NCBI GenBank assembly: GCA_037447605.1
Contig: CM074822.1
Span: 1,821,492-1,885,491, forward strand
Origin: Zygnema circumcarinatum SAG 698-1b
Taxonomy: Eukaryota > Plantae > Zygnematophyceae
Reading direction: 5' to 3'
Length of the DNA stretch: 64,000 nt
Positions 2,040-64,000 of the stretch are shown one piece after another. The position numbers and the translations under genes are program-made. The first letter of the stretch is position 1. Each line of letters starts with the position of its first letter. A model generated the notes under the pieces. It had not been told where the DNA came from, did not search any database, and saw nothing but the letters and a program-made list of their open reading frames with translations.

Positions 2040-5000
2040 TCAAGTCAGCTCCAAGTTTCCATGTGGTTCCGTGGAACTGTTTTGACCCCGTTTTTTCAGC
2101 ATGGTGGCCTCGGCAGCGTGTATGCACTCCGCCATGGAACAGTTCGTCTTCACGGAATTCGACTCCACATGGGAACGACTCGCCTTATAGCCACGCTGCA
2201 CCGCACAGCCAACACGTGACAGGGATCGTTAGAGAGCTGCTGCAACCAACTGCGGTCCGTTCCAAGAGGCCTAAGCAGGATCAGCAAGCTTGCAAGCCCA
2301 AAAATGAAAGACAACCGAACAAATTGCAATAAAAAAACAGCATCGTACTCTTTCAAACTTCGATTCTGGAGAAATAAAATGACTCCTTGCACACCTCATG
2401 AAGGGCCGCAATGAGATCTTTGCGGCGAGGAGTGGGAATTCGCCCTATGCGTGCTATCTGCACATCGCAGCTTACACCACACTCTTTGCCTGATCATCAG
2501 CTACAAGAATGTTAGGGTTTTAAAACTGAAGACGCAGGCAGGCTAGGCCCTAAGAGCCCCACTGAATCTAGCATAGGAGAAATATTACAAAGTTAGGCCT
2601 CGCCCAGCACCTGATCGAGGTGAATGTATCCCGGCAAAAGCTCCGGATCGCTCTCCTCCGCCATGATGCCCAGCAGTTCCGCCAACTCCTGAGACTGAAA
2701 CTGAAACTGGCCGGCCCCCTTCTGCATGGAACGGCTCGAGCTGGCGGACCCCTTTGATGGCGAGGTGGGATTGGTCCAGGACCACTCCTCGGCCAGGCGA
2801 GCCATGGCTGCCACGTCAGCACGAGAGTGCAGGGGACCCGTCCACATTGGGCCAATCACAGCCATCTGGCGAGGCTGGACAGAAGTAAGGGAAAAAAAAG
2901 GGAGGGAATGTGAAAAAAAAAATAAGGAAATGCTCAGTTACGGTAAAATCTGACGAAAGATCAAGGGCTGCTGAAAAAAAAATGCTTCAAAATGCTTTTT
3001 TGGTGTTTCAATGAATGCATGTGTGATGCCCTAATGCCCTCATCTTCCTGCAATGTGGGACTGCCACCTGGCAGCGGCTAGTAAGGCTCACCTCATGGCC
3101 ATGTACAGATGATCTGCAGAGGGCGCTTCCAAGCTCTGACCACTCAAGGGTGGCTACATTGCCACAAGCGAAGCAATGGGCGATAAATTTGTAATTTCTG
3201 TAACGGTCAACCAGAAGTCACGGATCATTTGCCATCAGAACTAACATCTCAAGTCGAATTTCCACAGCAAACCAACAGTTTAATGAGATGGCTATTCTAG
3301 GATGCAGTTCAGAGTTTCAACAGCACCGTCAAAGTAGTTACCAATCACGTACAATGAGATGGTAGAAGGGGAGGCAGAAGGCCTTACTTACGAAGCCTTC
3401 CATTGTTTTTGAGGGAGCACGCGCAGAAGTGTGCGAAAAACGGGTCCGTGAAATGAGTAATGCGAAAAGACGGGTTGAACCGTCAATCCCCTCGTAGCGG
3501 CTTCTCTGACAACCCCTCCTATAAGCATTCGTAGACCAAGTTCATTTGCATATGGAAGGGGGCGAATGTATGCGCCATAAGCACCAAGCGACCTGTTCCA
3601 TGCGGCAGGTTTTCAACGGAGGATTAACTTCTCAGTTCCTCACTTTATCTTCAGTTCACCCCCTTACCCACCCCTCTCTCCCCNNNNNNNNNNCCCCCCC
3701 CCCCCCCCCCCCCTACCCTCGCTTTAGCTGCCTCCCCTCTCTCTCTCCCCCTCTCTATCTCTCTCTCTCTTTTTTTTCCCATTTCAAAGAGTCACTTGCG
3801 CACCATAACCTTCTTGTCACAAGAGCAATTCAGAGAAAGGAATTCCACACATACCGGAAAGGAGCATGGCCGCCGGAAGAAAAGCCATCAGTTGACGTAG
3901 CATATAGTAAGCCGCCACGACGGATTGCCATTAAGGCTGAACCCAAAAACACCGAGTCGCTCCCAAATGAATCCACATCAATGAGGTCATAGTAATCTTT
4001 CACCTGTCAATTGCAAAACTTGAAACTCACATATGAAGTTATTCAACCATTTATTAGACGAGCCTCGCCTTATAAGGCTCAATGAGGAAACGAACAATAA
4101 CAATAAAGTGGTCCCAAGGACAACCTTGCCCAAATAAAACAAAAACTTGAATTTCCTTGTTACTGACAGAGCACACACTGTATTCCTCCACAGCAATTCG
4201 ATATAGAAGCAGAACGCGTCTACTGATGTGTTAAGAAAACAAAAAGTTGATGATTAGAAAACGAATAGTTAACGTTTTACGATGCGGAACGCCGATACTA
4301 TCTTCACCAAAGTCGACCTATTGCAGTGGATTTCCTCATATAAATTTATTGACAAGTGTAGTGACTTACGTCAGCCCACCTGATAGCAGTGGAACAATAT
4401 CCGATTGGCATCCTCATGAGTAATCCTCCATCGGTCAGACTCAACAGTCAACCCACTGCTGCCATCTCCCTCCCAGTTCCAGCGTACTGATGCGGCACCT
4501 CCTTCAGCTTCATTCCGACCCCTAAACCTTTTGCTGAATTCAACTGCATCAATTAAGCTATCACTACTTGCGCCGCCATTGTCAACACACACATCATCCA
4601 AAGCTTGGCCTGTAACGCTCGCATGTTCACATCCCTCAGCTTCACTCCTGCTTCCCGTCTCCTGAGCCCCACCTGCGTGTGTGAGATTGTGCAGGAGAGC
4701 GGGATGTGTGGCGGGGCTCGCATCATTCGCCCACACAAAGTCTGCTCCGGCATGCACCATATACCGAAGAGCCCGCACCCCACTTCCACACATTACATCC
4801 ATCACCCTTAAACTTCCAACGCTTTCCCGATACAGCGCTGCGGCGAGCATCGCAAGGTCCCTCCCAAGCGCACTCTCTCGCCGATAAAAGGAATTCCCCA
4901 AGATAAAACTCGCTCCCCTTTCACTGCTACCTCCTTCCACCCCTCGTTCTGAGCCTCCAGAGGAAACCCAACTCCCATCCTTTCCATCAGGGACCCCACT

Positions 5001-5153
5001 TGCGGCCTTCACTGCAATGCCATTAAAATTACCGCTCCTGCAACTCCTCCTCTGGCATTTCCCTTTCTCTCCCTCCTTCACCATCTGAACCTCTCCTCCT
5101 CTCCGTCCATTCAACCTCAGCCCCATGCCCGCCAGCCGCCCCGCCTCCGCCAT
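2040..5153 (-). CDS. TRM1: tRNA (guanine-26-N2)-dimethyltransferase, Trm1 family (similar to the plant At3g56330 type), with a probable organellar transit peptide
   Basis: Seven exons: 5153-4380, 4003-3855, 3592-3392, 3197-3092, 2874-2611, 2457-2395, 2195-2040. Motifs: SFYRRESALGRDL, VMDVMCGSGVRALRY, YDLIDVDSFGSD, GGLLYATSTDG, ELGLRMLIGG, HGPVFR, HCFACG, GPMWTGPLH, EESDPELLPGY, GYKASRSH, KTNCSM. Confidence 0.93.
3684..3693. other. Assembly gap (10 N) within a poly-C tract in a TRM1 intron
   Basis: Run of n flanked by C homopolymer. Confidence 0.95.
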
Positions 5154-8480: not shown

Positions 8481-21519
<13,039 letters not shown>

Positions 21520-41652: not shown

Positions 41653-43612
41653 GGGGAGGGAGGGAGGGAGGGAGGGAGGAGGGGACAGGGCGGAGGGGCG
41701 CATTTGTAAATTGGTGTTGCGAAGGGCAAGCTGCTCTCGACGTGCCTTCGTTTGGGGCTTTAAAGTATATAAGGATGTTAGTGGGGTCGCAGTAGAAAGG
41801 GGCTATTTAAGAGATATGTTCGCTGGTACTTTTTGTGCGGAAGGTTGCAGGACTGGCTTGTAAATTTTCCTTTTTGGACTGTGTGGAGAGTGGTGCCTAG
41901 TGTAGGAGTTGGCCATTGATAGGTTTCACAAAAATGTGTGATCCGCCTGCTTCCGGAAATGCGCTTATTCAAAATATGGGTGTGCTGCTGCTCGCGACTG
42001 TGCTCCGTTTGCAGTCTGCATGGGGCCATCCGAGTGCAGGGTATTGCCTGCAATAGCTCTTGTGGTTTGACCGGGCGAGCGTTGGGATATGTCATGCAAT
42101 GAGAAAGACTAGTGGCTTGTTTCCATTGTGCTGAAATGTTTTGTGGCGGTAATGTATTATATATGAATAGCCAGTAAAAATGAAGTTAGAAGCCTTCCCC
42201 TCGACGTGTATGGCTAGACATGCGGAGTCTCTGAACATGTGCAGGCTGTGCGTTCCTCAACATCATTCGGAAGTGTACTGCAGCAGAAAAAGCAACACTC
42301 TATGAGTAAAATCCGATTACCATTCGGAAATAGACCGTATGGTACGATAAAGATGGTTTTTCGCGTGTACTTTAACTAGACATGGTTGAGAAATCACAAA
42401 ACCGTACACTTAAAATTTGAGTCTAGAACGATGATGAGATAATCGATCATCTACCCGCGGACGCTTCTGACTTGTTCTTCGGAAGATTCAGCGATCCCTT
42501 TGTCTTGGTTAGCAACGTGTAGGGTTCCTGCATCCTAAAGCGATGTAAAGTGATGTAAGGTCTAATTTCGGGCTACTCGGCAGAGTTCCGATTTTTTTTT
42601 GGCATATTCCTCGGAGGTGAGAATTGCGGCTACATCTGGCCAGTTTGCATGTTTGCGTGACGGGTTCTACCTAGTCCACTGCATCCTCAGATTCGGATCA
42701 ACGCTCTCACAGGCCCTCAGCATACTCGTGTCGAAAATGGCTGTCGTTAATGGCTGCTTGGCACCACGGTTTGGTGTCAACCGGTGGTCAATGGCTTGCA
42801 AGAGCGCACATTGAGAGCATAACAACCCACCGTTGAACCGAACTCTCGTGAAGGACGAACTCGTCTGCCAAGTTCACGGAAGGTTTGCCGCACACCCGGC
42901 GGGAGGCGTGTCGTCATTCCAATGGTTCGTCGTCTTGCGCGCACCGACCAGGGACCAATCGCAGGATTGGACGCGCGCACTCCCCGCTCCCCCATGCGCC
43001 TCAACCCGCCTCGGCCTCTGCCGGGCGGGACTGCGGATGTGATGACGCGAACAGTGCGTTCCATGTCCCCGTCTGCGAACGGAACAACTGCCTGTCATCC
43101 ATGCGGGCGATTGACGGCTTGCGTAAAAATTGGAGTTCGAGTTGCTCGGGCACAAACTGCTCTTGGAAGGCGCCATTTGGGGCGTCCGCATGACACAAAC
43201 CTCTGCCACTTCCACTTATAGTGCCGTGTTGTTCTTGTCGTTGTTGGGCCTGGAAGCAGAGTGCCGTTCATAGCTTTCTCCTTTCGTCCTTAGGTCCTAC
43301 AGTTACCGGTTCCTCGTGGTTCTCTTCTCCAAGTTGTTGTTGTTGTAGTCCATGTTGCACCTTCCATGGCCTCGCCATGCGCGAGATCAATGGCAGTCCT
43401 CGTCTTAATGTGCTCATGGTGCAACACGCCGCAGTGTACAATGTCCATGAAAGCGACGGCATGGCCATGATGCGCGCATTGATGGGTCCCCTCCCGCACA
43501 TGCGCATGCGCATATGCACATGCATGCATGCCGCCAGCCGTCAATGCGCGAGCCGCCCACCGGTCAGCCGCCGTCACCGCGCCACGGAGGTTACTGCCGC
43601 CCTGGCCCTAAA

Positions 43613-44601: not shown

Positions 44602-44785
44602 AGTGCGCGGGGGACGGGGCGCAGCGCGCGGCGGCACGACACTGACCGACCGACCGACCGCGGCGGGCGCCTCCGTCGAGGAAAGGGGGCGGACAAGGGG
44701 AGGGAGGGGACGAGGGGAGGGATAGAGGGAGGGGACGAGGGAGGGGAAGAGGGAGAGGGAGAGGGAGAGGGAGAGGGAGGTCGCC

Positions 44786-46615
44786 ATGGCTCTGTTCGAC
44801 AAGTTTCTGGCCGTGCGTAGACACCCCGGCACGACGCAGGCGGTGGAGCAGCCGCTGGCGCTTGCGGCGCAGCTGGCGGCACTGCAGCAGCTGTCAAAGC
44901 AGCAGGCGGGGGCGGGGGCGGGGGTGGGGGGGGGGGCGGCGGAGGACGTGTGGAGCGTCGTGCAGCGCCAGTTCCTGCCCAAGTGCTCCGACGCGGAGGG
45001 GCTCCGGTCCCGGTCGGCCAGCCCGCCCGCCGCGCAGCTCGCCGCTCTCAGCCAGGCGCTGCGCGCGGGCCTGCAGGGCCCCTCCGCCCGCGCGCCGTGG
45101 GTGGCGGCGGATATCGACGGCGGCAGCGCCCGCAGCAGGGCCTCGTCTGCCGCCAGCCCATCCTGCATCACTGCCACGTGGCAGCAGGGAGCAGAGACAG
45201 GGTCTATCCAGCAGCAGCAGCAGCAGGTCAGGCCCTACGAAAGCCTGTCCATGGCTGCCCGCGCGTCCTGCATAGCGCTCAGCCATCGTGCTGCGGCCGA
45301 CATGCTCCCTGCAGGATGTTTACAGACGGGGGAGCGGCTGCTCTCGTCTCTCGAGAGAGCGGCTGGCGAGGAGGTCGGCCGCTGGGCCGGTACCGCTTCA
45401 TCAGCGGCCCCGCCGAGGGCCCTGCAGCAGTCGAGGGGGAGCAGGGCGGGAGCGCATTTGGTTCCCACATTTTCTGGCGCGGAAGAGTCGGGCACCGCCA
45501 TGGCGGGAAGGTCGGATGCTAGAGCTGGCCGGGGGTTTTTCCGGAGATGTGTGAGCGAGGAGTTCCCTGCTGTGTTTTCTTCTGCGTACGAGGCCGACCA
45601 GGACGGCGATAGGAAGGTGCTCGCAAATGCATCGGAGAGGGCGCAGCTGCACCATGGAAGCGCTGGCAACGGCTCTCCTACCAGCTGCCAGTCCAGCACA
45701 ATTCTCAGCTCCGTCGCCTCTTTCCAATCCTCCAAGTCCTTTGGCGTACGCTCCATCTCTGGGCCTATTCTGAGTTATAGCACGCAGAAGCGGAGCTTCG
45801 ACGCCATGGCAGGGGCTGCGGAAGCGCAGGCTGCGGGTGCAGGCGACAGCAGCCCTGCGGGGTCGTACGGCGCCAGCAGCAGCAGCAGCAGCAAGAGGAG
45901 GCCGACTGCCAGTTGGCTGTCCCCTGCCTCCCCCGCCTGCCTGCCTCCCGCCTCTGCGCCGGAGCTGCCCCGCTCCGGAAGACATGGCGCCGAGGACGGC
46001 CCTCTCGACAAGCCCACGACTCTGAGCACAGGGTACTTTGTATCTCCTATTTCCCACACTTCTCCTCCTCCTCCTCCCGCACAGCAGATCCTACCAGCTG
46101 GCAGCAGCCGAGACGCCGACTGCAGCGCCATGGGACGGTCGGCGGAAGGGGGAGCGTGGAGCAGCTCTATATGGGACCCCGACAGCCGCCGGTCCTCGCA
46201 CGCGTATCGGAGCGCGGCGGCTGCCTCCGCTTTCGCTGCGACCCGTCCCTCCCTCCCGCCCTTTCCGCCGCCGTCTGCTGCTGCCGCTGCGAGCAGGGCC
46301 ATGGCCGCCCCTGCCTGCGACGCGTGCGGAGGGGCGGGCGGCAGCGGGTGCAGGTGCAGGGGAGCCAATCGCCGGCGCGGGGCGGCGGCGGAGGACTGCG
46401 TGCTGTTCGGACGGAGCATGGCGGGCGAGCGGGACGCGGCGGAGGGGGATGGGGGAGAGGCCGCCGCTGCACCCCTGTGGCAGCCGCTGCAGGGGGGGGT
46501 GAAGCTGGTGGCCATGGATTTGCAGGCGTCCTTCATGCCCAGGGAGGAGAGCCGAGAGAGTGGTGATGCCGCGGAGGCAGACAGGGCGAGCTTGGATCTC
46601 ACTCTGCGGCTTTAG
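44786..46615 (+). CDS. Intronless 609-aa low-complexity protein with an LFG motif and a C-terminal EAR motif (LDLTLRL*); putative transcriptional co-repressor adaptor
   Basis: gccATGg start after a GA-rich leader. A single GC-rich ORF containing KRSF, CDAC...CRC, CVLFGRSM, LWQPLQ and terminal SLDLTLRL. No known DNA-binding domain recognised. Confidence 0.8.
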   Translation: MALFDKFLAVRRHPGTTQAVEQPLALAAQLAALQQLSKQQAGAGAGVGGGAAEDVWSVVQRQFLPKCSDAEGLRSRSASPPAAQLAALSQALRAGLQGPSARAPWVAADIDGGSARSRASSAASPSCITATWQQGAETGSIQQQQQQVRPYESLSMAARASCIALSHRAAADMLPAGCLQTGERLLSSLERAAGEEVGRWAGTASSAAPPRALQQSRGSRAGAHLVPTFSGAEESGTAMAGRSDARAGRGFFRRCVSEEFPAVFSSAYEADQDGDRKVLANASERAQLHHGSAGNGSPTSCQSSTILSSVASFQSSKSFGVRSISGPILSYSTQKRSFDAMAGAAEAQAAGAGDSSPAGSYGASSSSSSKRRPTASWLSPASPACLPPASAPELPRSGRHGAEDGPLDKPTTLSTGYFVSPISHTSPPPPPAQQILPAGSSRDADCSAMGRSAEGGAWSSSIWDPDSRRSSHAYRSAAAASAFAATRPSLPPFPPPSAAAAASRAMAAPACDACGGAGGSGCRCRGANRRRGAAAEDCVLFGRSMAGERDAAEGDGGEAAAAPLWQPLQGGVKLVAMDLQASFMPREESRESGDAAEADRASLDLTLRL

Positions 46616-47079
46616 GGTTCAGCTGCTGCGTGGGCGTGTGTATCTCCGCCCCTGCTTTATGCTGGAGGCGGCCAATCAGCAGCGGGCGCACTCGTTGAGA
46701 AAGTGTGGCAATCCTTGCAGGCCCCTTGGAGGGCGCGTCTCGCAGCAATAATGCTCATGGCTTAGACAGCGTTCTCCGTGGAAGCCGTCATTTTATAAAA
46801 TTTGAGTATAATTTTTTCAATGTTTAATATATAAGCATGCGGCTATTGCCGCTTTTGTCTGGGCTTAGTTGTCGTCGTCTTTTGACCTCATTCAGTGGTT
46901 GGTCGCATGTCTGCACTCTGCATGCTGGCTGACGAGCTGCAAGTGCGTGGCAGACGACATGGCGGCTTGTGAGCATGCATGCATGCATGCATGACTGGCC
47001 GTGCGTTCTCGAATGGGGGGGGGGGGATGAAACGCGGGACAAGGGGCTGCAGGCATGCGCGGGTCTTGCTGGAAGGGCA

Positions 47080-47320
47080 GCGCGTGCCATGCCATGATCC
47101 CCATAGTGCCATCCATCTCATGCCATGATCCCATGGTGCTAAACATGCCATCCTATGATCCCGTGGTGCCATCCATGCCATGCCATGATCCCCATGCTGC
47201 CATCCATGCTATACATGATCCCCATGGGGCCAGCCGTCAATGCCATGCCATGGTCCCCATGGCGCCATCAATGCCATGCCAAGATGCCATGAGGCCAGCC
47301 ATCAATGCCATGCCATGCAC
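47080..47320. repeat. Degenerate ~30-bp CCATG-rich minisatellite
   Basis: About 7-8 imperfect copies of atgccatgatccccatggtgccatcc. Confidence 0.8.
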
Positions 47321-47560
47321 CCCCCCCCCCCCCCGCCGCCGCCTGCTGGTTCCACAGGGCGCGGAGCCGCGGAGGCCCCTTCCCCGCGCCCGCCCGCTGG
47401 CCTGCACGCGCGAATGTCGGCGGTCCTACCCACCATCATTGCTTCTTGTCGCATTAGCGGATCCGCCTGCAACCCGCTCGAGCTGGTACTGTAGCGCGCC
47501 GGATCCCGCCGCTCGGCCGCAACCGACCTGCCGCCCGCCGCGCCCGGGTCTAGTCGGTGA

Positions 47561-50352
47561 CCGTACAGGAATATGTCCGGTATCGGAGCGGAAACGACAA
47601 GAGCCGGCGTTGGCGACCGTGCGTGAGAGAAATGGTCAGGTTGCCGTACTTGTATTTATGTAAATAAAACAATACGGGTTTTTGTCATGTAGGTTGCCCA
47701 TTTGATGGGTCGCCAGATCGATTTTGCCACGTCATCGGCTTCATTACCAAATCTTTCTGGAACGCGCTGACCGTACGGCCTGGCAAGAGGGAGGGTGCGC
47801 ATAGTGGTGTCCAGATCCTCCTCAGGGGGGCGAGAGAGACAGGGACGCGCTGGGAGCCGATCGGACGTACATACATGCATGCATGCATGCTAGCCACCTG
47901 GCGGGACAACCCGGAGGCAGGGCCAAAGCGGCCATTCACAGCGCACCACGTGGCCACCACTACCTACCAGGCGCCCGCAAAATTCTTTTTTGTTTTTAAC
48001 GGACCGCGATGGAACGGCCGCCAGCCAATCAGAAGCCACCGACCACGCGTCGTTCTGTTGTATAATGGGCGACAGGGACAGTATGTCGTTTTCAGCAAGT
48101 GCGGAAATTATCGCGACCTCGCCGGGCGGGCCCGGAAATATCGGCACCGGCCGTCCGCTGCAGCCGATGTGCGGCGGTTCCCCAATCAAATCGCCGCTCT
48201 CGCCTGCCCGTCCGCCTGCCGGCCGGCGACGGCCGACGACCTCTCCGGCGGTGCGTCGCGGCGATGGTACGGTCCGAATAATTCCAAACACTTCCGTGGC
48301 CCCCAGGCTGGGGCCGTACGGAGATACGGACTGGTGCCGCCCCCCGCGAGCGAACCCCTGCGCGTTCCGGTAGCACGGCGGGCCAATGGTGCGGCGCCAG
48401 CTGGCCCGCCCTCCGACCGGTGCCCCCCAAGATAGCCAGCTGGCCTTGCGGGCGGGCCAAGTCTCTTGTCGTATGCGGGCAGTAACGACCGCTGGATTGC
48501 CACGTCACGGCGGCGACTAGGCTTCGGGTCTGGTTGACCGTACATGAACGCAGCTACTCGGAAGCTTCCATTCCAAGTTTTCGTCAGCTTCCGTTTGAAG
48601 GTCGCGGCCGTACAGGGACGAAATTCGCCAGTTTCGCACGTGCGACGCTTCGTTCTGTCGCACTACCGTAAAACCGAACAGGTTGCGAAAAATATTGAAA
48701 GATTTTGGCTTCTCAAAAAGCAAAAACTTTCAGAACCAGTTTCTCAAAAATAATCCTATAGTTGTGAACACGATTCATTGTGAGAAATGAGAAATGAATT
48801 CCTATTTTTTTTTCTCGATTCAATATTTAGGAATGATGTTTGTCAATATTTATGGAGAACCAATTCAACATTGACCAATTACTTATTGTTCGTGTTCAAT
48901 TTGAGTTTTCCCTGGGTCTACCAATCAACAAAATGGGATTCAAGAGGACCGCAAAGCGCGTGGGCCCGGAAGTTCGTACAGAAATTTTTAATCGGCTCGC
49001 CTGACGAGTCGTACAGTATGGCAATTATGGCGCTCGGAACTAAATAAAAATGACTGGGATAAACCATTCCCTTTCGAGGATGCTAAAATTATAGTTTAAC
49101 CGGATCCCTCGAATTGCACGGAACTAACGTGTCGAAAATTGGAATCCACACAAGCGACCGAACACATTGAGTCTTTGAGCTTTTTTCTTAAAACTTTCCG
49201 CTTTCTTAAATCGAAAATGTTCAACTATTGAGAATTGAGAATTAAGTAAACTCGTTTCTCAATTTCTCATTTCCTGTTCGGTTTTACGGCATTGAAGAGT
49301 GGCGAATGGATGGCCCGGTGCGACGCTTTGCCCACAGTGCGACAGGTCGCCTGTAATGCGACGCATGGTCCGTCGTGCGACAGACAGCATGCAGTGTCCG
49401 TCCGTCGCACAGGGGCCTGCAAAACGACACTTGTCCGCTGCGAGCGCGATTCGCTCCTTCGCATGCCACAGTGAGCGTGCCGCGCTGGCCGCCTCCGTTA
49501 TCAGCACATGGAACCCACAGGAATCGTGTCGTGACCTGCTGAAGGTTCCATGAAATTAGGGTTCCATACCGGCCAATGGTGCGAGGCGGCATTTCGGCGT
49601 GCTTACCCGCCTCCTTGCAAATACGACAATTAATACCGCCCAGTTGGTCAGCTGGCACTCTGTACGAAACCCACTTGACCTTCTAGCTGACGTCCTGACG
49701 TCCACCCGGCGGCATGTGATTGGAAGGTGGCAGATGCGTGCTGTCTTATTGCTGCGCCACTAGGCCGCATACGACACGATGTCAGATTCTCAAGATGTAC
49801 GGGCTCCCCCCAACGGTCCCATCTCGCTCCTGCGGACCCCGAGCGGTCCTTACGCCCCCGCGGTGCCGTACGCCCACCTCGCCGATCGCGGTCGCGACGG
49901 GATCCGCCCGCCCGGCGGCCTCGCTATCGGACACGGTAAGGCGCCACGCGGCGGCTGCAGACCGCTCGTCTGAGTATATATTTTGTCGTGATAGATGTTT
50001 GCCGCGCCTCGCAGGCTGGCGCGGGCCACGTGGCGTCCGGCGGTCCGGCCAGCGAACATTCAGTCCCTCCAGCCGCCAGGGCTTCATTGAATGGCCCGCC
50101 CCGCCGCATCCGGCGGCGTTGACGTGCGGCGGTCTGCCAGCGCAGGCCACCTGGCAGGCCTCAGGCCCGCCCGTACGCCAGGCCCGCCCCGGCGGTCGGC
50201 ACGGCTCGGCAGGTAGCGCCGACCGCCCGCCAGCTCCGAGAGCGCAAGGCGACAACTCACGGATCTGGACCCCGCTAGCCGCCAACTGGCGATCATTACT
50301 CCAACAGGGCCCGACCAATCAGCTCGCGCCTGGCCGCCCAGGGGTTCGTACG
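47561..50352. promoter_or_regulatory. Second CGTAC-rich regulatory region (about 15 sites, plus CCAAT and CCACGT boxes) between the EAR genes
   Basis: CGTAC/GTACG at ~47562, 47645, 47772, 47866, 48267, 48315, 48539, 48609, 48975, 49010, 49662, 49797, 49867, 50172 and 50347. CCAATCAG at ~48024 and ~50315; CCACGT at ~47727, 47946, 48500, 50026 and 50514. Confidence 0.5.
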
Positions 50353-50875
50353 GCTTGAAGGGACGGCCGGGATTTCGTATCTTATTTTCAACGCGGCGTC
50401 CGGATCCACCAGGCCGGGCCGCATCCACCTGTTGAACACGTAGACCCACTAGTGCCAACCGCACGAGCGAGCCCCAGCATTGACCTCGCGCAGGCGCGCC
50501 GCGACAAGGACCACCACGTCACCTCCCACCTCCGCAATAGGAGGGCGCGCAGCCTTATGACGTCACTCACAATGATTGTTTCGGAGCCGGGCGGCGACGG
50601 GCCGCTCCCGTCCGCGCGGGCGCTGACCGGTGAGAGTGCGCCAGCTGGCGCCCTGAGGGGCGGCAGGGCGGCACCCTCCCGCCAGCTCGCGCTACGCGAC
50701 AGAGACGCACCCACTTGTGCCTCCCTCCCTCCCTCCCTCCGTCCCTCTCTCCCTCTCTCCCCATCTCTCCCTCCCTCTCTCCCGCCCTCTCCCTCCCTCT
50801 CCGTCCCCCCCCCGCCCGCATGCCTCCGCCCCCCCGCCACCCGCCGTCTCCCCGCGCCTCCCCGCCGCCGCCTCC

Positions 50876-52870
50876 ATGGCGTTCCTCGGGAAGCTTTTGG
50901 CGGCCCCCGCGGCTCCTTCCCCTCCTCCCCCCCCTCCTCCTCCCGCGGCCCCCGCCCCTCTGAGCGGCGCAGAGCTCCTCGCCCTCCTCCAGCAGCACCA
51001 CGCCGCCAAGAGCGCGCGGGACCGCCACGTGGCCGCCTCCCCGCGCTCCTCCTCCCCCGCCAGCGTCTTCCCGCAGGAGATCAAGTTCGAGTCCACCCTC
51101 GCGCGGGCCATGGAGGCCGCCCAGAGGGAGAAGCCCGAGAGCAGCCATGGCTCCCTCCCGCCGGTCTGGCAGACGATCGGCAGCGCCCTCCTGTCCCCTT
51201 CGCCGTCCGACTCGAAGCAGAGCGTAGCAGGCGGCAGCCCGGGGGGGGCATCGCCAGACGGCGGGTGGGGGAGCCACGGCAGCCATGGCCGCCTCTGGCT
51301 CGAGTGCATGCTCGCGGTGGCCAGCGGGCAGTGGCCGCCTCCCCCCCCCGACAGCAGCCCTAGCGGCAGCCATGGCTCCCCCCGCCTGAAGACGGAGGCC
51401 GCCGCCATGCCGCGCCTTGCGGATGCGGGCGGGACTGGGCACAGCGAGCTCGCTTCGCAGCAGTCCATGGCTCTGCTCCGCGCGGCCGCCGCGCAGAGGG
51501 CGAAGGCGGGGCCGCTGCCGGCCATGGGTGCTGCAGATGGGGGAGGGAGGGAGGGCCACAGGGAAGCCATGGCGAGCCTCGCAGGGGTCTCTCTCCTGCC
51601 GAGCTTTCGCGACCTCATGGCGAAGCAGAATGCGGGCAAGGTGGTGGAGCCGAGCTCGGCAGCCATGGACGCGCAGCCTCTCAAGCTCCCGGACCTCAGC
51701 GCTCACAGCCTCCTCGCCGCCCTCTCCAGCCTCTCGTCCGCGGCATCCCAACCCTTTGGATCCATGGCGGCTGCCACCAAGCCGGACTCTCTGAGCCATC
51801 TGAAGAAGCGGCCCTTCCCGGAGGAGAGCAGCAGCAGCCATTTCCGGTTCGGGCCGGGGGGGGCGGCCTTCTCCTCCCTCCGCCTGCCCGCCGCAAAGCA
51901 GCGGAAGGTGGTAGTGGTCTCCTCCCCCTCCTCCTCCTATGGCGGCCCCGCCTCCATCTCCACTCCCTCCCCCCGCGACACCAACCTTGCACGCGCTTTT
52001 GAGGCGCGGCCGAGCCCGTCTCCCCAGCACGCCGCCGCCATGGCCGAGGAGGGCGAGCAGGAGGAGAGCTACGGACCGTTCTCCGCCGAGGCCGGCGCCC
52101 CCTCTCTCTCTCTGCCCACGTGGCAGAAGCTCCTGCTCTCCCCCCGTCCCGATCCGGCCCCACACGTGCGGCGCGAGACAGGTGGCGGCCGCCTGTGCTG
52201 CCCCAAGGGCTGCGCCATTTTCGGTCGAACGTGCGGCGGCGGCAGCCCTCCCGCCATATTCACATCGAGGGGGCCCTTTCCGGCCTTCTCTTCGTCTCAG
52301 GGGAGCCTCACTCCCCAAACGCCGCCTCCAATTTCGACATTGAGAGCATCCGGGAGGAAGGCTCTGCCGGCATCCAAGCTCGGCCATGGCTGCGCTTCCT
52401 TCGCCGGCAGCCCGTCGTCCACTTCGGTTCGGCTGGAGCAGAGCTTGTCGCCAGACCGGCAGAATGGAGGAGGCGGCCCTCTCTCCGGCGGGGAGAGGGA
52501 GAGGGAGAGGGAGAGGGAGAGGGAGAGGGAGAGAGAGAGAGAGAGGGAGCAGCCGCCGCAGAGCTTCCTCCTCTTCGGACAGAGCCTCGCGGCGAAGTTG
52601 GAGGCTCCCCGCGCCCCCCTGCCACCCCCCAAGGAGGTTGCAGTAGCGGCCGCCAACCTTTGGCTGCGGCTGCAGAGGAAGCAGCCGAGCAGAGGAGGCA
52701 CCGCAAATGCAGAACAGCAGAGTGGATTCTCCCCTCCTCCTCGCCATCACCCTCCCCTCCCCCCTCCCACTGCCCCTGCCCCTCCCCCTTCCCTTCCCAC
52801 TTCCCTCCCCTGCTTTGCGAGAGCGGTAGCAGCAGTGCCCGCGGGTCTGGACTTGGACCTGAGGCTGTAG
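50876..52870 (+). CDS. Intronless 664-aa low-complexity protein with LFG motifs and a C-terminal EAR motif (LDLDLRL*); divergent paralogue of 44786..46615
   Basis: ctccATGg at 50876, in frame with ORF 50717..52870. Contains KKRPF and KQRK (NLS-like), CCPKGCAIFGRTC, an (ER)n repeat, FLLFGQSL, LWLRLQ and terminal LDLDLRL. Confidence 0.8.
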   Translation: MAFLGKLLAAPAAPSPPPPPPPPAAPAPLSGAELLALLQQHHAAKSARDRHVAASPRSSSPASVFPQEIKFESTLARAMEAAQREKPESSHGSLPPVWQTIGSALLSPSPSDSKQSVAGGSPGGASPDGGWGSHGSHGRLWLECMLAVASGQWPPPPPDSSPSGSHGSPRLKTEAAAMPRLADAGGTGHSELASQQSMALLRAAAAQRAKAGPLPAMGAADGGGREGHREAMASLAGVSLLPSFRDLMAKQNAGKVVEPSSAAMDAQPLKLPDLSAHSLLAALSSLSSAASQPFGSMAAATKPDSLSHLKKRPFPEESSSSHFRFGPGGAAFSSLRLPAAKQRKVVVVSSPSSSYGGPASISTPSPRDTNLARAFEARPSPSPQHAAAMAEEGEQEESYGPFSAEAGAPSLSLPTWQKLLLSPRPDPAPHVRRETGGGRLCCPKGCAIFGRTCGGGSPPAIFTSRGPFPAFSSSQGSLTPQTPPPISTLRASGRKALPASKLGHGCASFAGSPSSTSVRLEQSLSPDRQNGGGGPLSGGEREREREREREREREREREQPPQSFLLFGQSLAAKLEAPRAPLPPPKEVAVAAANLWLRLQRKQPSRGGTANAEQQSGFSPPPRHHPPLPPPTAPAPPPSLPTSLPCFARAVAAVPAGLDLDLRL

Positions 52871-53423: not shown

Positions 53424-56400
53424 TCACTGAGCGAATCGCTTTCGACACAGCAGCGACCCCTTCTCCTCGTACTCCCTCTTTGTGACGGCCCTCCCCTTGA
53501 ACTCCTCACTGCTTGCGAACAGCGACCCGCCGCACCATGCGCTCAGCACAGGACTGCAGCATGTGCACGCAAACCCAAAGCAGCACCCGCAAGACATCAG
53601 CGACATGCACTCGTTATTGCTCCACAAAAGAAGAAAAGCGAAGGACGATAAGCTCATCAGACCGACCGACCTTGCCCGCACCATCACAGACAGCCTACAT
53701 GCATACATGCATACATGCATGCATGCAGAGCTGCCCCTCCCTCATGCGCGGCAGACCCACCTGGGGGGCGTATGCAGCCGAAGGTCGTATTCGTCCGGCA
53801 CCAACGGTCTTAGCTCCGCTTCTCTGCCATCCATGGGGGGGGGGTGGGAAGGGAAACAGACGGGTCATGTGAGATGATGCATCGCCGGCATGCATGCATG
53901 CATGGAGGCTGCATGCATGGCATGCATGCATCCCCCCCCATGGCAGCGGCAGCACTGCCTGCCACGCTGTGGAAGTCCACTCACAAGCGCTCTCGAAAGA
54001 AGGGGAAAAGTGTGCTCCCACCCGTCAATAGAATGCTGCCACATGCCAAATCCAACTAACGTTGGGTAAAGACACCTCCGAAACTGCCCCATCTAAGGCT
54101 TTTGTTTTCATCAAGCATGTTTCTAAAAGCACAAGTCTATAAGCATGCTTCCTAACCTTTGCCTATGGCAACCCCCCTCGTAAAGCAACATGGAGGCCCT
54201 TTCCGCTCACCTTGAGTAAAGAAGCGGCTGCAACTCCGCAGGGCTTGCCCTAACGGCACGATCTATGCATTCCGCCAAACCTGCCTCGTTCATCCCTGCA
54301 AGCAACCGCAAAGAGAGTCCGAAAGCGCTCATGGAAACAGGAAAATACTTGCTACGTCTCGAAAAAGAATGTTAATTCTCGCCCAGAGAAGAAACAGGTG
54401 AAGTAGAATATGCCATCCATTATAGAATTACCATGAGCTATACCCTCCAATCTCTCCGTGCACCGATCTACAAACCCATTGCCTATTTCTTCCTCCCCCT
54501 CCCGGGACACCCATTTGAATCTTGGACGATCTAACGCACATTTGCTGCCATTCAGAGCAAAGCGAGTTCGGCACAAAATCTCGCACCGAGGTCAGTCGGG
54601 TGAAACAGAGTTTCAGGAACCATGAAACGCTCGTTTGTGAGGGATAACTCCTGCAGCGCATAGAGAGAGACGTACAAGCAGTCAAAAAGTCAAAACACAA
54701 AGACAAAGGAAACGACACAAGACTACAGAAACAGAAAAACATCTCCAGATAACTCATGCACACCTGCTGCAGAGCTGCTGCCTCTTCCTCCCCTTTCCGC
54801 TTCCCTCGTGGACCACCACCCGGCGGTTCAGTAGGGACTTTCTTGCCTCCCCCTTCGAATCCTTTGCCATCCTTTGTCATACCCCCAACTCTTGCATTCT
54901 GCACTTGCCCTATCGCTGCGGATTCATCATCTGCAGCGACCTGCTTCTGCTTCTTAAGGAGCTCTGCCTGCAACTGCAGAGCCCCCTTCGCTTTCTCCAA
55001 ATCCTTGACATACCCGCGGCGGTGGCGAACTCCATCCGGCAGCACATATTCGGAGCGGAAAGGGTTCGTTGGACCTGCAGACCTGCTCTTGGCCTTCTTA
55101 AAACTTCAGAGTTTGACCCCAAAATGGTAAGAACACTGGGGTTTGGCGGCTCAGAGGGACTCACCTGCCGATGTTCAGATCTCGAAGAACATCCATGGAG
55201 CAGAAGCACAGCTTTTCCTTCACATCTTCCATGAGATATGTTTCATCCATCATGTTCCATGCGCGATATGATACCAGCTCCTTCAAATAGTTTGTTAGCG
55301 CTTTTCCACCCAGGTTGATTCGCCTGTCCATCCGAAACCCATACATGCAGTTCAGTAAACGCAATTAAAGGACCTACAAGGAAATACACGAACATAACAC
55401 TTGTGAAGGTCCGAGAAACCCTTGATGGAAAAACCTATTTTGTCACTTGTACGCTGGAATTGAACGTTTTTGCTTAACAAATGTCTGGTCGATAGAAACG
55501 CACCGCACAGCGCTTTTTATGATGTGGCCATTGAATATTGGCACCGCGTGTGTGAAGGAGAAGCCTGCGTCTACGACAAGACTGCAATCAGATCTCGCCA
55601 GAAGACTTCCTGGATGAAGCTTTGCCTACATCATGCAACAAACAGGAAACGCACCATATATCATTCAAGTTCGCGCATGCTCAAATGCATAGATGGTAGA
55701 AACAAGGCGAGGAAAGACCCTGTATCTGAACGAAGAAGGGGGCTTACTTGGTGAAGGTGACTGAGCACTGGCGGCGCCATGGTGCAGTACGATCGAAATC
55801 CATACTCCTCAAATACCACTTCGTCTGTGGCCTTCTGAATTGAGCTGAGGGTGAAGAGGGGCTCAGTTAGCAGCAGGCTGCACTCTGATGGTTTCACCTG
55901 GGCCAATTAGAGCTGGGCCTTTTGTTACAAGCTGCCCTCTGCTGTTCCCACCTGAACCAGAATTAACCAAAGTTGACAAAAGCCAACCTTGAGAGCAGTT
56001 GCTAAGACTTTCGCAATGACCAGTGCGACATCACAAGGGAGTAATGGCGGCTGCGGGTCGGATCAACCTGCGGAGTTGACGGGCCAACCTCGGACCGCAG
56101 AAGGGAAATATTCACACCTTCAGATGCACGCTGAGCGCGCGGTCCCAGACCTCCTTTTGCGCATCCCAGTTCACCACATAGCCTCGGTCCACGGGGCGGC
56201 GGAAGGTCAGCCCCTGCATCGTGCACGCCCAGTAAGAGAGGACGGCACTACCGGGATCACAAATTCTTAACGGAACTTTCGGACGTTGTTCTAAATGAAC
56301 AGTGTGCTGACCATTGCAAACGCGAAGCTTATACTGCTTATTTTTTCTTAACCTGCACTAGTCTTAGTTAAAAGTTGATTTCCGTCCGTTGTGCAGTACG

Positions 56401-59840: not shown

Positions 59841-59930
59841 GAGCATTTGGCCGAGTGGTTAAGGCGCACGCCTGCTACCTGTGAGAGTGTGTGGGTTCTA
59901 CCCGCGAGAGTTCGAATCTCTCAGTGCTCG
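59841..59930 (+). tRNA. tRNA-Ser(GCT) with an 8-nt intron at the canonical 37/38 position
   Basis: Acceptor GAGCATT/AGTGCTC, D-arm GCC-GAGTGGTTAA-GGC, anticodon stem CACGC/GTGTG, loop CT-GCT-A[cctgtgag]A, long variable arm, T-arm GAGAG-TTCGAAT-CTCTC, discriminator G. The spliced length is 82 nt. Upstream CAA triplets and a downstream TTTT terminator are present. Confidence 0.92.
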
Positions 59931-61197: not shown

Positions 61198-64000
61198 TTA
61201 TCTCAGCACAGTCCCGTCGCAGATCTTCCAACCGGTCTCTGTGAGCACGAGGTCGTAATGCACGGTGTACGCGTCGCGGTAGGAGTCGCTCTGCAGCTGG
61301 GAGGGGTCGAACAGCCGCGCACTCTCCTCGATGGTCGCTTCCACTGTAGCGCGGTGCCCGTCGGGGGCAAGCTGCACGTCTCCAATCTGAAGGGCAGACA
61401 GCAAGGGTTACAAGGTTGAGAACACGGGCAAGCAACACAAACATAGAAGAGAAAGAGCTAGAAATAGTACACAGTTCAAAAGGAAGAGGTGATTTGGGAA
61501 AGGGGAAGTAACACAAGAATGGAGGATGAGGAGAAGAGTCGTGCAAGAAGGGAACTGACCCCTTCATTCAGAAAGCAAGGGAGGAGTAGGTGAAGGGCGA
61601 GTACAGTTCTATGGACCCCCTGGGTCGTTCATTAGCCCATAGAACCATGAGGACGCAAATGCGAATGCTCTTATAGCTTAGACAAGCAAGGATTGGAGTA
61701 CCCGAGTGGGTTCCTTTTCGCGCAGAGGAGGTTGGCAACTTTCCAAGGTGCACAAATCAGTCTTTCCACTGCAGATGGACTTTCCTTCCATGCTGAAATT
61801 CAACGATGCTAGAAAACTCTTCACACATACTGACAGCTTGCACATGGCAATTGCATCGCCTGCCATGCACACTTTCTGTCCTTGCCAAAGTTTTCTCATA
61901 TCTCGCCCGTGCAGTTTCAGTTATAAGCAGATTCAAAGTAGCTTTAGCCCACCTTGAGGTTCAGCAGAGTGAACTCCCAACGCCACTTGTTGATGCGCGC
62001 TTCGACGGCTTTTGCTCGCCATTTGTCAAGCATAGGGCCCTCCAGAATCTGGAAGTCAAACAAGCCTCTGCTGCTGTCAAGTGCTGCTATTTTCCGTTTG
62101 CTTCTCTTGGTGGTCGCCCACGCGCCACTAAGAATATGACATGACCGTCCTCACAAAAACTTCGATTACCCTCACAATAATCTTCTGGGTTTCTGCCTGA
62201 TGGTTCCTATCCAAACCTGCTTCCAAACTTTCAATTACCTACGGGCAAAAATTTCTGAAGAAAACCGCAGTTCAACTTTAGATTACATCCAAGCAGCAGT
62301 GTAGCAATAGCATGCTGTGCTGCAACTGTCGTTCAATTTCTTCCAGCTTTAGATTGATCAATTTTTGCCTGAGTCATAGTGCCTTTAAAACTGACCTCTT
62401 CGAGTCTCCCAATATCATGCTTCGTGCCAAGGGCTGCCGCTTTCACCTCCTGCCAGTTCGTCAGCACGTTCTGCGCTATCTTCTGTTGTCTTGCCTTTAC
62501 TATCCGAATTTCTGCTGCCTCTTTCCCCCTTCCTGTATGGCCCAAACATTTAATGCCACAGAACTTGAGTCGTACGGCAGCCTGACAAGATTACATGCTG
62601 AGACTACGGCGGTGCTTCAAAAGCAATTACGACTATATATAGATGGAGTGACATCAAGACGAGACCGAACTATGATCAGTCAAAACTCATGTACTCAGAG
62701 GTTTCAAGAGCAGAGATGGTCCTGTGGTCTTTGAGTTTAAGTCATATGTTTGTGTACCGATTGAAGAAAACCAAAGAGAAGAAAGAAGGAATGAAGGAGA
62801 ACTTCCACAAGCCATTCTCTCACCTAATGACTCTGAGATTTCAGATACTGCAGCTGGAAATTGTCCAATTGCGAACCTCCCACCAATGTGCTTTCTGCCC
62901 ACATAACCTGCCACAATTGCGCTCCCAAGAGCAAAACAGAGAAGCACCATCTTTCCTCCATTCCACCATGAGCTCTTCTCCTTCTGCTCCCTGGCAGCAG
63001 ACAGCTCTCCTTCCTCGTCCGCCATGTCCAAAAGTCCGTTGCCCCCTCGACCAAAACCAAACTCTGTGCTTCCATGAGCTGCCTCTCGATCCATTTCAGA
63101 AAGCATAGCCACATCGCCAGACCCTCCAAAGACTTCTCTATCTCTCAACCAGAACTCCCGTTGACTCCGATTCCGTGCCACAATAGCTGTCTCTACTGTC
63201 CCTTCAGACTTTGCAACATATTGACTTTGATTGTTTCCGTTTCTCTGCTGCCAGGCTCCATTCTGTATCACTGCATTCCCCTTCCCTTCGTCAGTTTCGA
63301 ACTTTCCATTCGCAAGAACACCTCGCAACGCCCTCAAGGCGGCCAAGGCCTGTCTTGCCGCCCCTCCTGCTTGCGCACCTGCATCTTTGATACTATTCAG
63401 ACAAAGTGCAGAACCCCTCTCTAAGCCGTCCAATTCGTTTATAACCACAGGAGCATCGAAGTAATCCCTCAGGCTGACTTGCTTTCCCTCCAGATCCCTA
63501 AACCGTTGGATGAGAATCTCTTCCAGCCACCAATGCAGTGCTACACAGAGGCCGGAAAGAAGCTCCGCTTTCAGGGGCTTCTGATCCATCTCACTTCTTC
63601 CCGTCGCTTGTCCATTGGTGACTTTAGCACCCCCCTCTGCGACTTCATCCCAATCTCTGCCTACCTCAACATCCACTCCTAATCCTGTCCCAGTCATTTG
63701 ATTCCACCACAGGCCTGAAGCCTCTGGAGAATTCTCATACACAAATCTTGCCATTGTGAGGTCGCCTGTGGGCGGATCTTCATCCAATCCCAGCCGCATG
63801 AGGCAGTCTCCCACCTGCCCCAAGAGTAGAGCACACATAGCTCGCTCTACCGACAGTTCGTTTGGAAGAAACCCTTCACTTTCCTTGCTCGCCCTCTGCA
63901 GGACATCTGACCGCTCCTCCAGCTCAGCAAGACGAGCATCTGCTTCTTTAATGTCACTCGGACGATTGTTGAAGAATCCCCTCGCAACAAGTGCGAGAGC
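61198..64000 (-). CDS. ARC6: 3' portion of an ARC6-like plastid division protein (C-terminal DUF4101/IMS domain); starts beyond the window
   Basis: CALLLGQVGDCLMRLGLD...FVYENS...GLCVALHWWLEEILIQRFRD...LRDYFDAP, a TM segment, AQNVLTNWQEVKAAALG...HDIGRLEE|ILEGPMLDKW...WEFTLLNLK|...ATVEATIEESARL...YTVHYDLV...GWKICDGTVLR*. From memory it is closer to ARC6 than to PARC6. Confidence 0.85.

Follow-up and report, generated by a model that had tools for sequence, protein, structure and literature searches.

Two diverged tandem open reading frames of Zygnema circumcarinatum ending in an EAR-type motif: candidate members of a new family of disordered co-repressor adaptors

Do two long open reading frames (ORFs) that stand in tandem in GC-rich DNA of a streptophyte alga encode related proteins, and could such proteins act as co-repressor adaptors? 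The question arises from a 64,000-nucleotide stretch of contig CM074822.1 of Zygnema circumcarinatum SAG 698-1b, called the window from here on, in which an earlier note had described a tandem pair of intronless proteins without a DNA-binding domain that share short motifs and end in an EAR motif. The two frames, named ORF1 and ORF2, are indeed present with sizes of 609 and 664 amino acids (aa), on the same (plus) strand and about 4.3 kb apart, the exact gap being 4,260 bp. From the comparison of their translations we conclude that they probably arose by an old tandem duplication and that selection has since preserved short linear motifs in them, and we hold it very probable that both are real, selected paralogous protein genes. 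They are located as follows:

44786..46615, plus strand: ORF1, one unbroken coding sequence of 609 aa and stop, rich in Ala, Ser, Gly, Arg and Pro, product predicted to be disordered
50876..52870, plus strand: ORF2, one unbroken coding sequence of 664 aa and stop counted from the ATG, rich in Ala, Pro, Ser and Leu, product predicted to be disordered

Which frame codes was examined first, because high GC makes long ORFs easy to obtain and because an antisense ORF overlaps ORF2. The GC content is 69.5% over ORF1 and 71.3% over ORF2, while most of the 64-kb window lies at about 45-55%. At codon positions 1, 2 and 3 (GC1/2/3) the plus frames have a GC content of 0.66/0.66/0.77 in ORF1 and 0.68/0.63/0.81 in ORF2, and this profile with a high third position (GC3) is the usual coding pattern. 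First-order Markov simulations of the same DNA reached the 629 open codons of ORF1 in 0 of 3000 runs and the 737 open codons of ORF2, whose frame is open from stop to stop from 50657, in 0.13% of runs (p = 0.0013). The antisense ORF of 727 aa (50567-52750, minus strand) extends across ORF2, is rich in Arg and Gly and has a GC1/2/3 of 0.81/0.65/0.69, with the peak at position 1. It has no Pfam match and no counterpart opposite ORF1, where the antisense strand is split into pieces of 173-325 aa, and we interpret it as a shadow frame opposite a GC3-rich gene.

Single-exon models appear the most economical for both genes and are favoured because the frames are uninterrupted and the likeness between them is anchored at both ends. 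A probable 5′ leader abuts each start codon:

44672..44785, plus strand: GA-rich (GGGAGA)n tract, abutting the ATG of ORF1
50717..50875, plus strand: CT/C-rich tract, abutting the ATG of ORF2

An out-of-frame ATG is found at 50820 (plus strand), 56 nt 5′ of the ORF2 start, and the 47-codon frame that it opens (50820-50963) runs past the main ATG; it would form an overlapping upstream ORF if the transcript begins upstream of 50820.

Compared directly, the two proteins showed no detectable similarity by pairwise BLASTP (E = 1.4), and phmmer with all filters off gave negative scores. Their global alignment scored 91, relative to -14 ± 24 for shuffles of ORF2. Permutations of 10-, 20- and 40-residue blocks, a procedure that preserves local motifs and low complexity and breaks their order, scored from -6 to -14 ± 25-27, which places the observed score at z = 3.8-4.5; it was reached by no more than 1 of 400 block permutations. 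Shuffle tests of the ends gave p = 0.001 for the last 100 aa, p = 0.0005 for the last 20 aa, and p = 0.02 for the first 45 aa. The global z-score and the tests of the ends agree with the earlier claim that both proteins hold common motifs in the same order despite low identity.

Nine short collinear matches extend from Met1 to the stop codon. With positions given as ORF1/ORF2 residue numbers, these are MA[LF][FL]xK[FL]LA at residue 1 in both proteins, L[AL]LQQ at aa 30/35, AGxxL[VL]P[TS]F at aa 221/236, a small basic patch [QK]KR[SP]F at aa 332/310, SSPxxSYG at aa 355/349, C[SA]x[MF]GR[ST]xxGG at aa 446/446, [VL]LFG[RQ]S[ML]A at aa 539/565, AAAxLWxxLQ at aa 560/591 and, at aa 603/658, LDLxLRL followed directly by the stop. 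All strings quoted by the earlier note, namely the N-termini, LALQQ, QKRSF/KKRPF, LFG, AAAxLWxxLQ and the terminal LDLxLRL-stop, were recovered. The main motifs lie at these positions:

44786..44812, plus strand: ORF1 N-terminal motif MALFDKFLA, starting at Met1, predicted helix at residues 2-12
50876..50902, plus strand: ORF2 N-terminal motif MAFLGKLLA, starting at Met1
44873..44890, plus strand: ORF1 LAALQQ, within a predicted helix at residues 23-41
50978..50995, plus strand: ORF2 LALLQQ, within a predicted helix at residues 31-54 (predicted local distance difference test, pLDDT, 73-79)
45848..45874, plus strand: ORF1 mid-protein motif SSPAGSYGA
51920..51946, plus strand: ORF2 mid-protein motif SSPSSSYGG
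46118..46153, plus strand: ORF1 first FG-type motif DCSAMGRSAEGG, aa 445-456
52208..52243, plus strand: ORF2 first FG-type motif GCAIFGRTCGGG, aa 445-456
46397..46426, plus strand: ORF1 second FG-type motif CVLFGRSMAG, aa 538-547
52565..52594, plus strand: ORF2 second FG-type motif FLLFGQSLAA, aa 564-573, predicted helix at residues 562-575
46460..46492, plus strand: ORF1 LW motif AAAAPLWQPLQ
52643..52675, plus strand: ORF2 LW motif VAAANLWLRLQ, predicted helix at residues 585-600
46592..46612, plus strand: ORF1 terminal EAR-type motif LDLTLRL, TAG directly after
52847..52867, plus strand: ORF2 terminal EAR-type motif LDLDLRL, TAG directly after

Each protein holds two FG-type motifs, one copy beyond the LFG described before. 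The Cys clusters proposed earlier as a further collinear pair had to be given up, since their positions do not match (ORF1 has CDAC..CRC at aa 511-524, ORF2 has CCPKGC at aa 441-446); the CCPKGC stretch of ORF2 aligns with aa 445-456 of ORF1 as the additional FG-type motif. The window has 179 stop-to-stop ORFs of 100 aa or more, which together comprise 30,557 aa. LDLxLRL occurs twice in them, at the two C-termini, and LFG[RQ]S[ML]A also twice, in ORF1 and ORF2. Across the six-frame translation of the window (128,000 aa), MA[LF][FL]xK[FL]LA and SSPxxSYG are present in ORF1 and ORF2 only, and four of the eight occurrences of hydrophobic-[MF]-G-[RQ]-[ST] fall within these 1,273 residues. The generic LxLxL is represented in ORF1 by the terminal motif only, and in ORF2 by the terminal motif and one other occurrence, within the LW motif.

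Identical motif residues mostly use different codons in the two genes. In the terminal motif, encoded by TTG GAT CTC ACT CTG CGG CTT TAG in ORF1 and CTG GAC TTG GAC CTG AGG CTG TAG in ORF2, 6 residues and the stop are identical, and 5 of these 7 positions differ in codon. A DNA repeat search between the two loci returned microsatellite-type families only and no trace of a duplication at the DNA level. The different codons and the lack of a DNA repeat thus show a likeness maintained in the protein sequence and in this reading frame, with fixed points at the start and stop codons. The same evidence bears on another explanation, in which both would be untranslated open frames in GC-rich islands (non-coding RNAs, decaying duplicates or compositional artefacts) and the shared strings relics of duplication. 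High GC readily produces long ORFs such as the antisense frame over ORF2, and no similar protein, not even the proteins themselves, was found in the public protein collections searched; however, both frames have stayed open over more than 600 codons though the DNA has diverged beyond a detectable repeat, and the shared residues were kept through synonymous codon changes and meet exactly at ATG and stop. The GC3-high pattern is moreover confined to the sense frame, the antisense of ORF2 peaking at position 1 and that of ORF1 being broken. Untranslated frames are therefore an improbable explanation in our view.

No recognisable DNA-binding or other domain and no known family emerged from Pfam, PDB and profile searches or from AlphaFold models, in line with what the earlier note had claimed. 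The check for hidden domains that it had suggested was made with Pfam at E <= 1 and returned no domain: none for ORF1, and for ORF2 a sub-threshold, spurious DUF3915 on its low-complexity (RE)n tract only, which is located here:

52472..52561, plus strand: (GAGAGG)n tract, which codes for the (RE)n run of ORF2 (aa 538-558), a predicted single helix with a pLDDT of about 90

A profile of the pair had no match against PDB sequences at E <= 1. The AlphaFold models had a mean pLDDT of 36 for ORF1 (two-sequence alignment) and 45.5 for ORF2 (single sequence), and helices were their only elements: both proteins have them N-terminally, and ORF2 has further ones around its (RE)n, LFG and LW motifs. Both products are thus predicted to be mostly disordered and without a folded domain; the shallow inputs leave room for a small fold, of which there is no hint. 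The 20 flanking plus-strand ORFs up- and downstream of both genes contain no Pfam domain, and there is therefore no sign of a neighbouring DNA-binding exon. The helices predicted at both N-termini, the Cys spacings CxxC-x8-CxC in ORF1 and CCxxxC-x6-C in ORF2, and the room that one- or two-sequence models leave for a small fold would suit transcription factors or chromatin proteins whose DNA-binding element (N-terminal helices, Cys stretches) has gone unrecognised and that carry a repression motif of their own, rather than adaptors. We give little credence to this explanation: the Cys stretches of the two proteins do not correspond in position, the models have a low pLDDT everywhere but in the (RE)n helix, Pfam, PDB and profile searches had no match, and the C2H2/QALGGH pattern is missing.

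How far does the family extend beyond the pair? Word-index protein searches with both full ORFs had no match, not even to the proteins themselves. A search akin to the hidden Markov model search that the earlier note had proposed was run with a full-length two-sequence profile against 1.84 billion representative proteins and found no relative and no plant protein; in simulation this profile still detects orthologues of 30% identity and most 150-aa fragments. Six matches (E 2.6e-4 to 9.3e-4) were rejected as low complexity, being short proteins aligned to the (RE)n/ERERER run only. In the ESM Atlas, ORF2 had no usable match and ORF1 only unnamed clusters scoring 0.77-0.78, and two metagenome scans with N-terminal and C-terminal patterns yielded about 600 pattern matches each, none of which was confirmed. 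The paralogues cannot find each other by these methods, so that distant relatives would be missed as well. Of the "family" that had been proposed, the diverged paralogue pair stands; protein and metagenome searches added no relative, and the family so far amounts to two genes. With a function read from its motifs, the pair may be regarded as a new lineage-restricted family, so far of two members, within the EAR-bearing disordered adaptors.

What could such proteins do? That both end in an EAR motif was borne out: LDLTLRL-stop and LDLDLRL-stop agree with the sequence definition of the motif (DLxLRL, C-terminal) and, as judged from their residues, are of the SUPERMAN/TIE (DLELRL) type. The known plant repression motifs, LxLxL, DLNxxP, R/KLFGV and TLxLF, all recruit the TOPLESS (TPL)/TPR co-repressors (PMC3443911), and the EAR-binding TPL N-terminus is highly conserved in charophyte algae (PMC6797205). 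The engineered repression domain SRDX is LDLDLELRLGFA, and the LDL..LRL core that it has in common with SUPERMAN is matched by LDLDLRL of ORF2 and LDLTLRL of ORF1 (PMC6479872). Unlike in SUPERMAN/SRDX, the motif of ORF1 and ORF2 forms the very last residues of the protein. SUPERMAN is, in addition, a C2H2 (QALGGH) zinc-finger transcription factor, whereas no finger is seen in the pair: neither the C2H2 nor the QALGGH pattern occurs in either protein, and zf-C2H2 has no Pfam match in the ORFs or in the flanking plus-strand ORFs. As to the WUS-clade WOX proteins, there is no homeodomain Pfam match and the WUS box TLxLF is absent from both proteins, and as to Aux/IAA proteins, Pfam has no match for PB1/AUX_IAA in ORF1 or ORF2.

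The FG-type motifs are closest in arrangement to the B3 repression domain ARFs and RAV, which also have an LFG-containing motif N-terminal to an EAR-type motif within the same disordered region. These include CaARF of Chlorokybus, which binds the TOPLESS N-terminus via KLFG and an EAR-like motif (PMC6797205). In contrast to these proteins, ORF1 and ORF2 have no B3 or PB1 domain and carry the FG motif twice. The earlier reading of LFG as an (R/K)LFGV-type motif was not upheld, as both the basic residue before it and the Val after it are missing: LFG is preceded by V/L (or, in the M/F-G variants, by A/I) and not by R/K, the G is followed by R/Q and not by V, and neither [RK]LFG nor [RK]LFGV occurs.

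Could the EAR likeness be a coincidence? ORF1 and ORF2 would then be real paralogous disordered proteins whose motifs are unrelated to TOPLESS and serve, for instance, in docking to a kinase or another partner, as a hydrophobic C-terminal degron or as an export-type signal. Paralogy and motif selection are seen and nothing ties the motifs to TPL, a clear nuclear localization signal is missing, LxLxL is frequent in translations of the window, and the LFG motifs are non-canonical. On the other side, the terminal motif is more than a loose LxLxL: as LDLxLRL it agrees with the core DLELRL found in SUPERMAN/SRDX and TIE (PMC6479872, PMC12349606), it forms the extreme C-terminal end, a position that the EAR motif of SPL has too (PMC4650584), and it is the sole LxLxL of ORF1. 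We regard a function unrelated to TOPLESS as somewhat less likely than the adaptor reading.

Adaptors of land plants offer the nearest comparison. TIE proteins combine an N-terminal helix with a C-terminal DLELRL (PMC12349606), and in SPL, TPL is engaged by the last five residues (LSLKL) and TCPs by the N-terminal part (PMC4650584). Like TIE/SPEAR and SPL/NZZ, the pair has no DNA-binding domain, a helical N-terminal part, a mostly unstructured remainder and an EAR motif at the very C-terminus, a TIE-type one (DLELRL-like) being present in both proteins. Unlike TIE/SPEAR and SPL, it shows no detectable sequence similarity to them in the full-length profile search of the 1.84 billion representatives, including no homology to the N-terminal helical Motif 1 of TIE/SPEAR; the TIE nuclear localization signal KRGK is absent from both proteins, and the additional FG and LW motifs have not been described for TIE/SPL. 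TIE proteins are about 130-200 aa long and SPL about 310 aa, and at 609-664 aa ORF1 and ORF2 have about three times the TIE length. They would resemble TIE/SPL in working at best and are not placed as members. That they are extremely diverged algal members of the TIE/SPEAR-SPL family is very improbable in our judgement: the profile matched no plant protein, KRGK is missing, the length is threefold, and such short motifs arise convergently. Membership would draw on the same order of parts (N-terminal helix, basic patch, terminal DLxLRL) and on the statement, in a study that itself found no TIE in algae, that an algal origin is conceivable (PMC12349606). NINJA/AFP proteins are likewise disordered adaptors without a DNA-binding domain that recruit TOPLESS via an EAR motif; unlike ORF1 and ORF2, NINJA has its EAR motif in the N-terminal part, and the defining Pfam entries of the family are EAR, NINJA_B and TDBD, none of which matched at E <= 1.

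Taken with these likenesses, the order of parts, with a helix at the N-terminus, two FG motifs in a disordered body and an EAR motif at the end, plausibly fits a TOPLESS adaptor without a DNA-binding domain. Selection has probably kept the short linear motifs only, that is the N-terminal helix, the basic patch, SSPxxSYG, the two FG motifs, AAAxLWxxLQ and LDLxLRL. The terminal LDLxLRL would bind the alga's TOPLESS co-repressor in its N-terminal groove, and the N-terminal helices together with the FG and LW motifs would bind partner proteins, most likely transcription factors, or possibly a second surface of TOPLESS. The proteins could in this way serve as bridges that lack a DNA-binding domain and confer repressor activity on their partners, in the manner of the land-plant proteins SPL/NZZ, TIE and NINJA. 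Whether ORF1 and ORF2 act through TOPLESS as adaptors we put, on motifs and analogy, at somewhat less than an even chance. Of the dual-motif repressor-adaptor idea in the earlier note, the paralogy, the lack of a domain and the EAR terminus stand, whereas the LFG motif turned out to be non-canonical and the function is read from short motifs. A more specific version, in which adaptors without a DNA-binding domain were invented in the algal lineage, are not related by descent to NINJA, TIE or SPL, and join to the terminal EAR both a pair of non-canonical FG(R/Q)(S/T) motifs and a helix at the N-terminus that binds partners, seems to us rather unlikely.

Several observations weigh against the adaptor reading or the genes behind it. 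No orthologue was found in the searches made, and conservation rests on one paralogue pair. In the LFG motifs (CVLFGRS, FLLFGQS), the flanking R/K and V typical of the B3 repression domain are missing, and neither protein has a classical nuclear localization signal, only short basic patches: KRR (aa 370), RRR (aa 529), KKR (aa 310) and KQRK (aa 341). The generic LxLxL occurs 258 times in the long ORFs of the window (the same 30,557 aa), and it is the strict LDLxLRL-stop only that is rare. The GC3 signal of ORF1 is weak between about 45500 and 46400, a stretch that is spanned by in-frame motifs common to ORF2. Both genes, finally, have a GC3 of about 0.8 compared to 0.42-0.66 in those other long open frames of the window that were checked. 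Their outlier status in GC might stem from retrocopy origin, biased gene conversion or recent origin.

As it stands, the pair represents well-supported orphan genes with a function resting on motif likeness. Adaptors with an EAR motif and without a DNA-binding domain (NINJA, TIE/SPEAR, SPL) have so far been described as land-plant proteins. If the version with an independent algal invention is true, disordered adaptors between transcription factors and TOPLESS would have been present in streptophyte algae before there were land plants, and would arise repeatedly by assembly of short motifs. Binding of the pair to TOPLESS would make it an independent algal example of such adaptors and provide a handle on the algal transcription factors repressed in this manner.

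Simple repeats are found around the two genes. (CATG)n runs of at least 3 units occur five times in the window, all within 43.5-53.9 kb and flanking ORF1 and ORF2:

43519-43530: (CATG)n run
46974-46993: (CATG)n run
47874-47889: (CATG)n run
53714-53725: (CATG)n run
53889-53904: (CATG)n run

In land plants, B3 factors bind the string CATGCATG as the RY element, and here it may be a local microsatellite only. The GC-rich spacer between ORF1 and ORF2 contains a 65-nt tandem repeat (TGCCATGCCATGATCCCCAT...) in about 3-4 copies at 47085-47323 (plus strand). Farther away, an open frame of 739 aa at 8655-10871 (minus strand) encodes about 200 consecutive glutamines and further long poly-Q blocks, with a GC1/2/3 of 0.77/0.35/0.42 and no Pfam match; a spike in GC skew at 10001-12000 is due to this frame. 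Other features of the window are listed below, and GC3 is 0.45 in the ARC6-like exon and 0.52 in the TRM1-like exon.

3684-3693: assembly gap of 10 N
4374-5153, minus strand: exon of a TRM1-type tRNA methyltransferase (E 2e-7)
59841-59930, plus strand: tRNA-Ser(GCT)
62690-63838, minus strand: exon of an ARC6-type plastid-division protein (Pfam ARC6, E 8e-19)

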